Shown in pieces: positions 17,739 to 60,870 of a stretch of 64,000 nt of DNA. How positions within the stretch are numbered: position 1 is the stretch's first letter; each line of letters starts with the position of its first letter. The stretch comes from Hyaloraphidium curvatum SAG 235-1 (lineage: Eukaryota; Fungi; Monoblepharomycota). Location of the stretch: NCBI GenBank assembly GCA_025558095.1, contig JAIVFI010000041.1, positions 1 through 64,000 on the forward strand. The letters run 5' to 3'. The position numbers and the translations under genes were made by a program. The notes beneath the pieces are model-generated. The model searched no databases, was not told the origin of the DNA, and saw only the letters and a list, made by a program, of their open reading frames with translations.

Positions 17739-18011
17739 CGCGGCGGAGGGCGCGAAAGCGTCACAATTTGGTGGCAGTGATAGTTCGTCGCGCGAAAGGA
17801 CCGCTGAGAGGCCGGAAGGCGGTTCTACGACGGGCGGTGGGGGGCAGTTGTCGGGCCGGCGCGGCGCGGCGCGTGCCGTGGCCCCCGCCCGCGTGGAACC
17901 TTCTTCCCGGTGGCCTAGCCGCGTCCTCGAACCCCAGAGGCGCCCTAAATTTCTTGCTGGAATATCGTTAGGTCACTTGCGACCCACCCGGACCGAGATT
18001 TCCCGGGCGCC

Positions 18012-19348
18012 ATGGCACAAGCGGCTCGCCCGCTCCCCTCGTTCACCGACTTTCCCGCATCCATCGCGGACCTCACCGCGCCGTGGCTCGAATCCGTGTT
18101 CCGCGCCCACGGCCTGGACGCCCGAGTCGCAAGCATAGAAGCGAAACAGGTCGGCACGGGGCAGGTCGGCGGCAGCTACCGGATCACCGTGTCCTACGAT
18201 GGGGACCCTGGGGAGGCCCCGCCGACGGTGGTCGCCAAGCTCGTCTCCGAGGACCCCGACTCGCGCAAAACGGGCTTCGCCACGCGGACCTACGAGCGCG
18301 AGGAGTACTTCTACCGGCACCTCTCGGGCCGCCTCCGCACCAAGGGGATGAGGATAGCAAAGTGCTGGGCCGCCGAGCACGCCCCCGAACGCGAGGCGGC
18401 GCTGCTGCTCTTGGAGGACCTGGCGCCCGCGAACGCTGGGGACCAGCTCGCGGGGTGTGATCCGGGGAGGGCGGAGCTGGCGCTCAGGGAGGCGGCCAAG
18501 CTGCACGCCGAGTTCTGGGCGTCGGAGGAGCTCCCGAAGCTGGGCGGGTTCCTGGGGATGCCGGGCAACCCGCAGGCGGCGGCGGGACTGGCGCAGGTTT
18601 ACCAGGGGTCGTGGTGGCCCGGCTTCGTCGAGAGGTGCGTCGGCGGACGTCCCCGTTGATCGCCAGGAAACCGACCTACCTCCCCTCCGATGCAGATACA
18701 AACCCCGGATGACCCCGCACATCCTCGCCCTGGGCAGCCGCCTCGCACGCTCCCTGCGCGGGTGGCTGCTGCTCCGCGCCCGCCCGCCGCTGACACTCGC
18801 GCACTCGGACCTGCGGATCGACAACCTGATGTTCCCCCCCGCGGGGAACCCGGGGGGTGACTATTGCTGCGTGGTCGACTGGCAGACGCTGCAGGTCGGA
18901 CAAGGAGCCGTGGACGTGGGGTACTTCCTCGGGGGCTCGCTGCTGCCCGAGGACAGGCGAAAGCACGCGAGGCGATTGGTAGAGGTGTGGAGGGGGGAGC
19001 TGTTGGCCAACGGGGTCAAGGACTGCACGGCGGAGCAGGCGTGGGACGGGTTCCGGCAGGGGTGGGTCCCCGCGCGCGCGTGCGCCATGGTGATTGGCTG
19101 ACGGGAAGCGCGTACAGGTTCTTCGCGAGCATGGTGATGGCCGTCGCGGCGGGGATGACCGTGGGCAGGACCGACCGCGGAGACGAGATGTTCTGGTTCG
19201 TGCTCGCCTCCATGGCCCTCGCGACGCGTGCTGACGGGACCGAAGGGCGATGTTCGCGCGTGCGGCGGAGGCGGCGATCGAGACGGGGGCAGAGGAGCTG
19301 CTGCCGGCGGAGGAAGGGGCGGAGGCGGGGCAGGTGCCCGCCCCGTGA
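18012..19348 (+). CDS. Phosphotransferase of the APH/ecdysteroid-kinase-like (EcK) family, 3 introns
   Basis: VGTGQVG, TVVAKL, YEREEYFY, LLLEDL, Brenner motif HSDLRIDN, VVDWQ, DVGYFLGGSL, RTDRGDEMF. Stop TGA at 19346-19348. Confidence 0.85.
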
Positions 19349-19423
19349 CCCGATATCCCAATAGAACCTCGGTCGACGACGCCATCCCTCGGTCCGGCAC
19401 CCAATGGTCTTCCGATCCTCTAT

Positions 19424-19500
19424 GGCAGCTCACGAGCCGGCGCGGATCAGGCGGCCCGCCACCTCGCGGTTTCCGCGGGCCCCTTCATGTCGCCTCTGCC
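19424..19500 (-). promoter_or_regulatory. Type II SECIS element in the 3' UTR of the SelW-like gene
   Basis: The minus strand reads GGCAGAGGCGAC-ATGA-AGGGGCCCGCGG-AAA-CCGC-GAG-GTGG-CGGGCCGCC-TGAT-CCGCGCC...CTGCC. It has an AUGA/UGAU kink-turn core, 12 nt from AUGA to AAA, a GC-rich helix II, an apical mini-stem and helix I. Confidence 0.88.
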
Positions 19501-19509
19501 CTTGGCCGC

Positions 19510-19936
19510 CTACGCGCCCCGCTTCTTCGCGAGCGCAGCCTCGACCGCGTCGAAGATGCGGTACAGCTTCCACTCCCTGTCGACCATGCCGTCCCCGTTG
19601 ATCTGCCGCCGTCCGGGACCCCAATTAGCGCCCCGCCGGGCGGAAGCGGGCACGCGACCCACGTAGGAATGCACCGTCTCCCCGTCCACCGTCACCTCGA
19701 ACTTGTACGGCGGCGGTTTGGGCGGCGCGGCACCGGTGACCCACACCGCCTTGCCGAACTCCTTCTCGACCTCGGAACGGATGTGCAGGTACGCCGGCAG
19801 GAAGCCTGGACTCGGGTGAGGGACGCGCCCCTGCGGAGAAGCGGGAGGGCGGACCTCATTTGACGCCGACGAGGAAGTCCACCCAGACGAGGCTGGGATC
19901 CGGCGGGGGCCCGGAGGGGCCGCCTTTGGGCGGCAT
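19510..19936 (-). CDS. SELENOW: Selenoprotein W-like (Rdx family) protein with in-frame UGA/Sec at 19856-19858; exons 19936-19855, 19805-19663, 19602-19510; 105 aa
   Basis: Spliced: MPPKGGPSGPPPDPSLVWVDFLVGVK-U-GFLPAYLHIRSEVEKEFGKAVWVTG...YKFEVTVDGETVHSY|INGDGMVDREWKLYRIFDAVEAALAKKRGA. This aligns with SelW (UGYKSKYLQL..LEDEF...[21 protein letters not shown]...IKAALA). A SECIS lies downstream. Confidence 0.85.
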
Positions 19937-20607
19937 CGCGGCCGGAGTCCGTGGTGTTGCGGCGGGACTCGACGAGCGCCCGTGAGCTGTGAGCCCTGAG
20001 TCCCGCGGCGTGCGGCCGCCCCTTCCCCTGTGGCCATGGACGGACAAGGACGGTACAAAACGATCGAAGGCTGGACGGGAGCTGATTTGCAGTTTATCCG
20101 GCTGCGAAATTCGCGCGATTCGTTGCCGCAGCAGGCTGCCGCTTGGCGTCGCCAGGCTCCCGGGCGCTCTTCTCGGGTGCAGACCGCTGCCGCTCCTATC
20201 CGGTGATCGAATTCTGCAGAAGATCGGCGCCTCATGGTAGATGCCGCATCCGCAGCTGCCGCTCCCTCCCCGGAATCGGCGAGGGACTCGCGAAGCCTGC
20301 GGCATCCCTCGCGCAAACGGGCCTTCTGGCTCCCCCTCGGCCCCTCTTCCCAGGCCGCCACAAGCAGTCGATCTCGAACATGCACCGCAATCCCTCCGGA
20401 CCGGCCGCGAATCCCATCGGGAATCCTGCGCAACGCCCTCGCCTCGGAGAATCCCCCGAACGTGATCGCGGGCTGGTGCAGCAGTTCTTGAATCACGGCT
20501 TCCAGGGACCATTCTCCGCCGCTCTCCCCCTCCTCTGGTCCCTCTTCCCGGACGTCATTACCCCTCCACCGCTCCGGATCCCGCGCTCCCCGCACCTTGC
20601 CGCCGCC

Positions 20608-22592
20608 ATGCGCGCCCTCCTTTCCGGCGCCGCCGCCGCCGCCCTCTCCGCCCTCTTCGCGGGCCCCGCCGCAGCCCAGTTCACGTGGGGTTGGCGCATG
20701 GGCGGGCCCGAGGAGATCCACAACGAGGGCAAGAACCCCGTGCAGCCATGGGTGGGATCCGCCGCTGGAGGGGGTTGCGCCACCTCCGCTGACAGGGTCC
20801 CGCCCGTCCGCCGCAGCACGTCTTCCCCGACGGCGGCATCTCGACGCTCCGAGGGAGCAACGGCAACTTCATCTCTTTCTGGAGCAACGCCGAGAACTAC
20901 CGCACCGAGGGCCCCACCGCGCTGCTCGAGGACCAGTGGCAGAACGTGCCGTACACGCCCTGGCCGGTGGGTCCGTCGAGGCTCTCCCCTTGCTGTCCAT
21001 TGACCCAGAGCAAGATGATCTACTACGGAGGCCGCGTGGACTACCCCGCATTCTACAACGGCGGGCGGTGGCTGCTCTCGGTGCACAAGCACCCGACCGA
21101 CGGCAACCCGCGGCACCTCGTCGCCTTTGTCCACGCCGAGGACGCCTACTGGTTTGTCCTACCTCTCCTCCCCAGTTGCCACCTAACCCCACCAATGATC
21201 AGGCCCCGCCACATCGCCGGCGGCCCAAACTGGAAGTCCATCATGGTCTCGCACTCGTTCGACGAGGGTTTGACGTGGGAGGACCGCGGGCAGATCATCA
21301 CGCACAACCACCCGCGCCCGAGCGATGCCGACTCGTGGGACTCCTCCAAGATCCGGACGACCACCGGAGGCTTGGGCAACCACGCGTGGGTGGCGTCCGG
21401 CGGGCCGCTCGGCTCGGGCTGGTCCTCACTCGTTCCGATACGCGGGTCCACAGCGCAATCTGGGACGCGCCCAACGGCCGCTGGGTCATCATCTTCGAGG
21501 GCAACTGGAAGGGCGTGGCGATCAGCTACGATCCCGACGGGAACCCGGGGTCGTGGCTCAAATGGAACGGGCCCGCGGAGGGCTTCTCGCAGCCGGGAAT
21601 CGGCGGGGCGTGGGCGCGGATCCCGGCGCTGCAGAGCCTGACCGGGACCAACCCGATGATCAGCTACAACGAGTACCTTGGCAGGGTGCGTCGTAACGGC
21701 CGACGACCGCCGGATGAAGCCGCTGACCCCCCTCCGCGCGCAGTACCTCGTCATGTACGGCCTCTGGCTGTCCAGGGGCGCATACATGGTGATCACGGCC
21801 ACCAACGACTTTGTGAACTGGGAAACTCCACGGGTCTTTGCCCGCTCGGTTGATGGCACCCGGGCATGGTTCCCCACCCTCATCAACGAGGCCTACGGAT
21901 CTTTCCGCAGCGCGCAGTACAACTGGCTCTACTACGGTGCGGTTGCGCTTCCCTGGTCTCAGCGCGGACCTGCTTGACGGACCGCATGTCCGCAGGCGAC
22001 AAGTTCGAGGTGCCGCGCACGGACAAGCGCCAGCTCATGAAGCGCTACGTCGAGTTCTGCCTCGGCGAAGGCTGCGGCGACGGCTCGTCGTACTCCATCG
22101 CCGTCTCGGAGCAGGGTACCGGCAACTCGCTCACCAACATCCGTGGGTCCCGATCGCCGACCTCCGCTTGCATCGCGCTGACGTTCCTTGCCACCGACAG
22201 AGAACGACATCGACGGCGCCGCCGCAGGCCAGAACCTCGGCCGCCCCATCGGGGCCGCCTGCACCGCCAGCGACCAGCAGTGCACCACGACCTGCTGCGT
22301 CAACGGGCTCTGCGCGGACCGCAGCCTGTGCGTCGCAGGCGGCGGCGGCAGCTCGTCGTCCTCCTCCGGCAAGCCCGACGGCGCCGGGTGCTCCGCCTCG
22401 GGCCCGGAATGCACCAGCGGGTGCTGCGTCAACGCCGTGTGCACGGTGCGGAACGTGTGCTTCGGGGACGGGCCGGCGCCGTCGTCGCCGGGCAAGCCCG
22501 ACGGGGCAGGGTGCTCCTCGAGCGGGCCCGAGTGCTCGAGCGGGTGCTGTGTGAATGCCGTGTGCACGGTCAGGACCGTGTGCTTCGGGTGA
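20608..22592 (+). CDS. Secreted beta-propeller glycosidase-like protein (Asp-box) with three C-terminal Cys-rich repeats, about 8 exons
   Basis: Signal peptide, FPDGGIS, AFVHAED, Asp-box SFDEGLTW, NPMISYNEYL, NDFVNWETP, then three copies of C-x6-C-x3-CC-x4-C-x5-C. Confidence 0.7.
22369..22590 (+). repeat. Intragenic tandem duplication, ~123-bp unit encoding a Cys-rich module
   Basis: GKPDGAGCS.SGPEC.SGCCVNAVCTVR.VCFG occurs twice, nearly identical at the DNA level. Confidence 0.85.
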
Positions 22593-59529: not shown

Positions 59530-59973
59530 GGCTGGCACTGGTGCGGAGGTGTTTGGCGTCGGGTGGTGTGGCGGGGGACGTTCGGCGTTGGGTGGGAGCG
59601 GCGACCGGGTCCTCTTGCCTCCACTCGCCACCCACACCCACTCAAGGTCCGGTGGATCGAGGAAGCACGAATCCGCGGGCCGAGTTGAGCCTAAGTGCCT
59701 TTCACATTGATTGCAATGCCGCTCCCGACTCGGATGCACGGATTCGCGCTTGATGACCCACCCCAGCAACTGTCTCCCACTTTGTACAGCACGCGCACGC
59801 TCAATTCAATCCGGTGACGACCTTTCGAGCAAGAGCACGTACACCATCCGAACATTAGTACATGACCCTCTGTTTGGGGCTGCAGATTCTATCCGACGTC
59901 GCACTTCCGGAAGGGTCCTTCTCCGTGGATTTCCGTCACCAGACCCAGACGATCCCCACCAGAGTCCTCAGCG

Positions 59974-60813
59974 ATGCCCCGCGCGCGCAACGGAGACGTG
60001 GAGCTGGAGTACGAGGTCTTCGGGACCGCGGGCGACGCCGTGATCCTCGTCAACGGCCTGGGGTCGCAGCTCCTCCGGTGGCCCGCGGAGCTCTGCGCGC
60101 AGCTCGCTGCCCAGGGGTTCCGCGTGGTGAGGATGGACAACCGCGACGTGGGGCTGTCGACGTGGCTGCCGGGAAGGGAGTACACCATCGCGGACATGGC
60201 GGGGGACGTGGCCGCTGTCGCGGACGCGCTCGGGGCGGAGCGGTTCCACGTCGTCGGCATGTCGCTGGGAGGGATGGTCGCGCAGCGCACGGCGATCAAC
60301 TACCCGCGGCGCGTGCTGTCCCTCGTTTCCATCATGTCGGGGGCCAACGTCGCGGAGTTCAGGTCCACCGAGGAGGCCCGCAGGGTGCTCGCCTTCGACC
60401 TGCCCGACCCCAAGGTGGACGAAGACGCCTACATTGCGCAGATGGCGGCCAACCGCGGCGTGATCGCGAGCCCGGGGTTCCGCATGTCGGACGAGGAGCT
60501 CCGCGCGGCGACCCTGGCCGAGTACCGCCGCGCGTACAACCCGGACGGCATAGCGAGGCAGCGTGCGGCGGTGATGACGGATCCCGATCGAACGCCCCTG
60601 CTGCGGGAGCTGGACGTCCCGACCGTCATCCTCCACGGCAAGGACGATCCGCTGGTGATGCCGAGCGCGGCCGAGGCGATGGCCGCCGCGATGTCGCACG
60701 CGGAGCTCCGGATCATCGACGGCATGGGGCACGACGTTCCGCCGGGGCTGTATGGCGTCTATGTCGACGCCATCCTCGCGGCAACCTCCAAGGCCAAGGA
60801 GAGGGCGCACTAG
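59974..60813 (+). CDS. Alpha/beta hydrolase (bacterial LipG-like), intronless
   Basis: GLGSQLLRWP, DNRDVGLS, GMSLGG, HGKDDPL, GMGHD. Confidence 0.9.
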   Translation: MPRARNGDVELEYEVFGTAGDAVILVNGLGSQLLRWPAELCAQLAAQGFRVVRMDNRDVGLSTWLPGREYTIADMAGDVAAVADALGAERFHVVGMSLGGMVAQRTAINYPRRVLSLVSIMSGANVAEFRSTEEARRVLAFDLPDPKVDEDAYIAQMAANRGVIASPGFRMSDEELRAATLAEYRRAYNPDGIARQRAAVMTDPDRTPLLRELDVPTVILHGKDDPLVMPSAAEAMAAAMSHAELRIIDGMGHDVPPGLYGVYVDAILAATSKAKERAH

Positions 60814-60870
60814 GTGCTGGGAATGTCACTGCTAGAACGTATTCATAAAGCTATCGTACTGTCGACACGT

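Follow-up and report, generated by a model that had tools for sequence, protein, structure and literature searches.

The 64,000-nucleotide stretch of Hyaloraphidium curvatum DNA analyzed here (the window) carries on its minus strand a three-exon nuclear gene which, judging from its sequence and that of its relatives, very probably encodes a selenoprotein of the selenoprotein W (SelW) type, with an in-frame UGA read as selenocysteine (Sec). The predicted product has 105 residues and belongs to the SelW/Rdx family; public annotation misses the gene. It had been pointed out in an earlier note on this DNA as a hidden selenoprotein gene in a fungal-type genome. That description of the genome was right, as H. 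curvatum is a fungus of the class Monoblepharidomycetes, the same class as Gonapodya, and the coordinates given for the gene all match the minus strand of 19300-20800. The features of the locus are as follows.

19510-20036, minus strand: public model P0001, 155 aa, starting at ATG 20036, with intron 1 retained and intron 2 removed
19855-19936, minus strand: coding exon 1, with ATG 19936-19934, 26 sense codons, TGA and the first base of a Gly codon
19856-19858, minus strand: proposed Sec codon TGA, codon 27, in frame
19806-19854, minus strand: intron 1 (phase 1; 49 nt), running from a weak GTCCGC donor to a CAG acceptor, with CTCAC as a branch-like motif
19663-19805, minus strand: exon 2, in which GC completes the Gly codon and is followed by FLPAY...VHSY, 47 codons
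19603-19662, minus strand: intron 2, an in-frame stretch of 60 nt without stops; donor GTGGGT, branch motif CTAAT, acceptor CAG
19510-19602, minus strand: coding part of exon 3, INGDG...KKRGA, 30 codons, with the TAG stop at 19512-19510
19439-19496, minus strand: candidate SECIS element, form 2, from an Rfam match, fold and descriptor, with outer pairing to about 19510-19424

The 26 codons that begin at ATG 19936 end in V-D-F-L-V-G-V-K directly before the TGA, and a single G (19855) separates the TGA from the GT of intron 1. The open reading frame ending in FLVGVK at TGA 19856-19858, followed by one G and a 49-nt GT..AG intron, is thus as the note had it, and counting exons and codons (26 + U + G + 47 + 30) reproduced the claimed length of 105 residues. 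The exon 2 frame also stays open through intron 1, and the resulting retained-intron reading frame (19510-20721) underlies the public 155-aa model. A false Sec-less annotation of this kind had been predicted, and P0001, which an exhaustive protein search returned, is that annotation. We judged the model wrong, because it is contradicted by the splicing described below.

Two introns, 18635-18695 and 19062-19117, are confirmed in a convergent neighbor gene on the plus strand at 17900-19274. The end of its transcript contig, at 19274, is only ∼235 nt from the SelW-like stop codon; the 3′ UTRs of the two genes must therefore be short or overlapping.

Splicing and transcript coverage

A transcript-derived contig from X1, the one public sequencing run found to contain this DNA, lacks both introns. 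Its joints connect 19602 to 19663, skipping the 60 nt of intron 2 (19603-19662), and 19804 to 19854, skipping 49 nt; shifting the latter cut by one position gives 19806-19854. A lack of splicing at this first intron had been named beforehand as a result that would refute the selenoprotein reading; the contig removes the intron exactly. In the spliced contig the UGA is in frame with the SelW-like body. Eleven joints were seen in 5 kb among the X1 contigs (all at least 99% alike), and all 11 have GT..AG ends when read on the coding strand of their gene, from which we take the contigs to be derived from transcripts. The local introns are 48-68 nt long and mostly start with GTG[GC]GT; the intron 1 donor, GTCCGC, is the least consensus-like of the 11, yet it is used.

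From the depth bins, the X1 contig spans 19494-19888. It aligns to the genome without a break over the 34 nt on the 5′ side of intron 1 (19855-19888), which include 11 codons ahead of the UGA. This unbroken stretch leaves no room among those codons for a hidden intron that could add a cysteine. No X1 reads or contigs covered 19275-19493 or 19889-20057, the latter including the part of exon 1 with the ATG (19889-19936). The contig therefore stops short of the ATG at its 5′ limit (19888), and its 3′ limit (19494) lies two bases into the SECIS element. Coverage gaps among the X1 contigs carry no evidential weight, and we infer that a 3′ UTR of 16 nt is implausible for this gene.

Homology to selenoprotein W and relatives of the gene

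We searched the exons separately, with the exon 2+3 junction taken from the public protein (P0001:78-155). The part following the UGA matched mouse SelW (2npb_A) over residues 14-86 in a phmmer search (E = 1.4e-10), with 40% identity over 74 aligned columns, in keeping with the alignment claimed in the earlier note. Since this alignment begins at Gly14, right after Sec13 of the mouse protein, the TGA falls at the exact Sec position of SelW. The Pfam Rdx profile (PF10262) gave 15.6 bits (E = 0.019) on the post-Sec part, below the cut-off of 22.6, with strand β1 and the motif lying outside the query. Exon 2 by itself scored 12.5 bits, and exons 1 and 3 taken singly gave no match to the profile. 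A structure model of the post-Sec part (pLDDT 70; β1 outside the model) has three strands with a helix before and after them (H-E-E-E-H); among PDB structures it again matched 2npb best (TM 0.63, Foldseek E = 0.016, prob 1.00).

The Sec would occupy the C-terminal position of the CxxU/CxxC motif, as in the Rdx family. The residue at −3 is Gly (G-V-K-U), so that the Cys of the CxxU motif is absent, a point overlooked in the earlier note, and the rest of the protein is cysteine-free as well. The cysteines of mammalian SelW include Cys10 and the glutathione-binding Cys37. The H. curvatum protein resembles mouse SelW in being a small single domain, in having Sec before a conserved Gly-aromatic pair, in the order of secondary structure elements after Sec, and in a SECIS element in a short 3′ UTR, which is predicted here. 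It differs from the mouse protein in having G-V-K-U in place of CxxU, in its lack of any Cys, and in a 15-residue Pro/Gly-rich N-terminal extension.

Searching the genome with the Pfam Rdx profile identified two further members, on contigs C43 and C20. The one on C43 is a canonical SelW paralogue.

L022:1391-1734 (gene plus SECIS, 1391-1849 = C43:206877-207335): canonical SelW paralogue, KAI9002127.1

This gene reads V-Y-C-G-A-TGA-G, followed by a 59-nt intron and Y-G-R-R-Y..., and ends at a TGA stop. Its TGA Sec codon (L022:1439-1441) is at the same place as in the SelW-like gene, and the two proteins are 38% identical by BLASTP (E = 1e-15). Its SECIS, at L022:1786-1849, consists of AUGA, 12 nt, AAA, a mini-stem and UGA, and has the ends AUGAAGG...CCUGA in common with that of the SelW-like gene. 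Both genes also have a phase-1 intron right after TGA-G, which strongly supports the gene model given in the earlier note. In the paralogue Y-C-G-A-U is kept and there is one intron; the SelW-like gene reads G-V-K-U, is interrupted twice and encodes a longer N terminus. The comparison indicates that the SelW-like gene is a diverged paralogue of canonical SelW (CGAU) in which the N-terminal cysteine of the motif was lost. In the NCBI model of the C43 paralogue (KAI9002127.1, “seleno protein W, 1”), the segment that contains Sec is treated as intron. The third Rdx gene, at L021:1351-1775 (C20, about 442964-443388), has at least one intron and a Cys-only CxxC motif (FYCPKCKW), and it appears to be a non-selenoprotein member of the family.

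An orthologue of the SelW-like protein, P0002, is encoded on a 28-kb Logan contig (L024) with a GC content of 57.8%, versus 68.8% for the H. curvatum window. On this contig an in-frame TAA is followed two codons on by an ATG, 21 further sense codons ending in V-D-L-L-V-G-I-K, TGA and G; G-F-L-P-A-Y-L-H-I-R-S-E follows after a GT..AG intron of 89 nt. The TGA (L024:2897-2899) and the position of intron 1 are both kept, and there is no intron at the position of intron 2. Common to the two proteins is V-D-[FL]-L-V-G-[VI]-K-U-G-F-L-P-A-Y (LVG[VI]K-U-GFLPAYLHIRSE). The Gly at −3 is conserved (G-I-K-U), neither protein has a Cys, and the Pfam Rdx profile scored 23.8 bits on P0002, above the cut-off of 22.6.

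Silent sites are saturated between the two genes, with pS at 0.74 versus pN at 0.26 overall; by exon, pN is 0.42 (exon 1), 0.22 (exon 2) and 0.20 (exon 3). In this test of UGA conservation, for which one orthologue with DNA was used, the substitution pattern indicates purifying selection on the peptide before the TGA, on the TGA and on the body after it, as one frame across the intron.

We found no synteny between L024 and the H. curvatum window. Two metagenome scans yielded no further orthologues, and a word-based protein search returned no relatives beyond P0001 and P0002. A third GxxU member, P0003, was encoded on a 531-nt contig of assembly GCA_041445565.1; its called protein runs past VHSY into V-G, as would be expected if an intron corresponding to intron 2 had been left in the model. 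The GxxU type is known, then, from H. curvatum, from one relative (the Logan contig) and from one NCBI assembly.

The predicted SECIS element and the selenocysteine machinery

The predicted SECIS begins 14 nt past the stop of the SelW-like gene. Its AUGA (19488-19485) lies 21 nt past the stop and is followed, after 12 nt, by AAA (19472-19470), a mini-stem and UGAU (19449-19446, with GA at 19448-19447). The arrangement AUGA-N12-AAA-mini-stem-UGAU had been placed about 22 nt past the TAG; both the sequence and the fold bear it out, the exact spacing being 21 nt. Rfam SECIS_1 matched 19496-19439 end to end with 21.9 bits (E = 0.17 in a search of 901 nt), the gathering score being 35. The minimum free energy fold contains helix I, an unpaired AUGA/UGAU quartet, a 10-bp helix II with one bulge, and the mini-stem (z = −2.5). 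A SECISearch-style descriptor of our own design found two sites on both strands of the window, versus 0.77 expected per 128 kb simulated, the expectation coming from first-order Markov simulations of the window. By our arithmetic, about one stop in a thousand would have such a site by chance in the 200 nt that follow it on the same strand. The second descriptor site (60574-60614, plus strand) is inside a 328-aa open reading frame (59862-60848), and we took it to be a chance match.

Downstream of the orthologue on L024, no canonical SECIS was found within ∼1.1 kb with Rfam, the strict descriptor or an energy-based scan. The segment L024:3375-3468 is SECIS-like and has the ends AUGAAGG...CCUGA, but its A-run comes after 19 nt (not 10-13) and its apical part measures ∼50 nt. 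It may represent the kind of fungal SECIS that Mariotti et al. (preprint, 10.1101/314781) describe as “undetectable”.

A search of the genome for the Sec machinery, as proposed in the earlier note, recovered tRNA-Sec, SepSecS, selenophosphate synthetase (SPS) with a TGA, and eEFSec. The tRNA-Sec scored 78.2 bits against a cut-off of 47, and ARAGORN called it as tRNA-SeC with anticodon TCA. SepSecS was found with 198.9 bits, and selD/SPS with 169.8 bits summed and one internal TGA. At the SPS locus (L006/L007; C2:990953-991939, minus strand), this TGA lies inside the selD match. The H. curvatum SPS is probably Sec containing, like the SPS of all Sec-using fungi in Mariotti et al. Domains III and IV of eEFSec (PF21208 and PF21131) lie side by side on contig C1, scoring 54.5 and 41.2 bits; each exceeds its cut-off, and neither profile had a match in 14 prokaryote controls. 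The bacterial selB model TIGR00475 was discarded as a probe for eEFSec, its top matches being mitochondrial IF2 and eIF5B. In the search for PSTK, TIGR03575 gave one exon match of 22.7 bits; the single PF08433 locus matches Kti12 (6qp0) and was rejected as a PSTK candidate. H. curvatum, like its relative Gonapodya, retains a working-looking Sec system.

Sec decoding has been described in the early-diverging fungi Gonapodya, Bifiguratus and Harpellales (Mariotti et al., 10.1101/314781), and Amses et al. 2022 (PMC9457484) report Sec as encoded in 11 early-diverging fungal genomes. Sec use by early-diverging fungi is established, as the earlier note stated for a few of them such as Gonapodya. The fungal families of Mariotti et al. 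are SPS, AhpC, MsrA, DI-like, TR, SelenoU and SelenoH; SelenoW is not among these seven. The H. curvatum gene is like the others in that eukaryote-type Sec decoding is kept in an early-diverging fungus, and Gonapodya is of the same class. SelenoH is of the Rdx family too, but the H. curvatum protein aligns with SelW (UG-aromatic, GDG-VD) and not with SelH. A recognizable SECIS was reported for 5 of the 16 fungal selenoprotein genes in the preprint, whereas that of the SelW-like gene is canonical.

Alternative readings and implications

Reading the UGA as Sec is supported by the spliced intron, the Sec machinery, the SelW homology and the existence of a Sec-less public model, all of which the earlier note had looked to and all of which were found; together they argue for a selenoprotein as the very probable product. 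An improbable alternative is that the UGA is a true stop, so that the gene yields a 26-residue peptide or a degraded mRNA, and the SelW-like exons are those of a decaying SelW duplicate. Decay could explain the lost CxxU cysteine, the weak donor of intron 1 and the Pfam Rdx score under the cut-off, and the end of the X1 contig at 19494, two bases into the SECIS, would suit it as well. However, a decaying duplicate would not be expected to show strong purifying selection on both sides of the TGA (pN 0.20-0.42 versus pS of about 0.75), a well-represented and fully spliced transcript contig, a well-formed SECIS 14 nt past the stop, and an orthologue in which both the TGA and the intron position are kept.

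We consider it similarly improbable that near-cognate decoding puts an ordinary residue, Cys or Trp, at the UGA, or that the organism reassigns UGA. The Sec chemistry is deduced from sequence and the Rfam score of the SECIS is below threshold, both of which leave some room for such decoding, but the genome has a tRNA-Sec with anticodon TCA together with SepSecS, SPS and eEFSec, and the UGA stands at the Sec position of SelW. Because the canonical SelW gene on C43 uses TGA both as Sec codon and as terminator, UGA cannot be generally reassigned. Least credible of all is that the public model is right and the product a Sec-less 155-aa protein that starts at ATG 20036 and includes translated intron 1: this intron does not interrupt the frame and NCBI carries the model, but the X1 contig removes intron 1, without which the ATG 20036 frame no longer fits that of the SelW-like exon, nothing in the orthologue corresponds to the 77 N-terminal residues (its own mis-called N terminus is translated intron), and the model discards the residue aligned with the SelW active site.

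On the selenoprotein reading, UGA codon 27 would be recoded to Sec by way of the SECIS hairpin in the 3′ UTR, eEFSec and tRNA-Sec. The Sec would then lie at the start of helix α1 in a thioredoxin-like fold, as the only redox-active residue of the protein. As the protein contains no Cys, the intramolecular Cys-Sec bond of SelW is impossible, and recycling would have to involve an external thiol or a diselenide. Sec could cycle via selenenic acid, or via a mixed selenenylsulfide with an outside thiol such as glutathione, thioredoxin or a client protein; alternatively, it could form an intermolecular diselenide.

The SelW motif variants that we found described in the literature are UxxU and CxxR. 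UxxU variants occur in amphioxus and Ostreococcus (Jiang 2020, PMC7539508) and show, like the present protein, that the first position of CxxU is variable in nature. They differ in that the first position is there taken by a redox-active Sec, whereas it is glycine in H. curvatum. The use of Sec in this fungal class was already known from Gonapodya, and a conserved, cysteine-free SelW homologue with G-x-K-U is not a new kind of system. What is new is a SelW-type family that is unlisted in the preprint survey of fungi, and GxxU in place of CxxU in a cysteine-free protein. We lean slightly toward the view that these proteins form an undescribed SelW-type subfamily in which Sec is the sole redox-active residue (xxxU rather than CxxU), that is, cysteine-free “mono-selenol” proteins with a thioredoxin fold.

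The SelW-like gene extends the short list of fungal selenoproteins by a SelW-type family, and it offers a clean canonical fungal SECIS where most reported fungal selenoprotein genes have no recognizable one. Both SelW-type genes of the genome are mis-modeled in public annotation, one as a read-through “hypothetical protein” and the other with its Sec region spliced out. The function of SelW itself is still poorly understood, and a homologue that is cysteine-free, conserved and expressed amounts to a natural experiment on whether the CxxU selenenylsulfide is needed for it. If the mono-selenol subfamily is real, the resolving cysteine of the Rdx motif would be dispensable when Sec is present, and the protein would have to act through an external thiol or a diselenide dimer.
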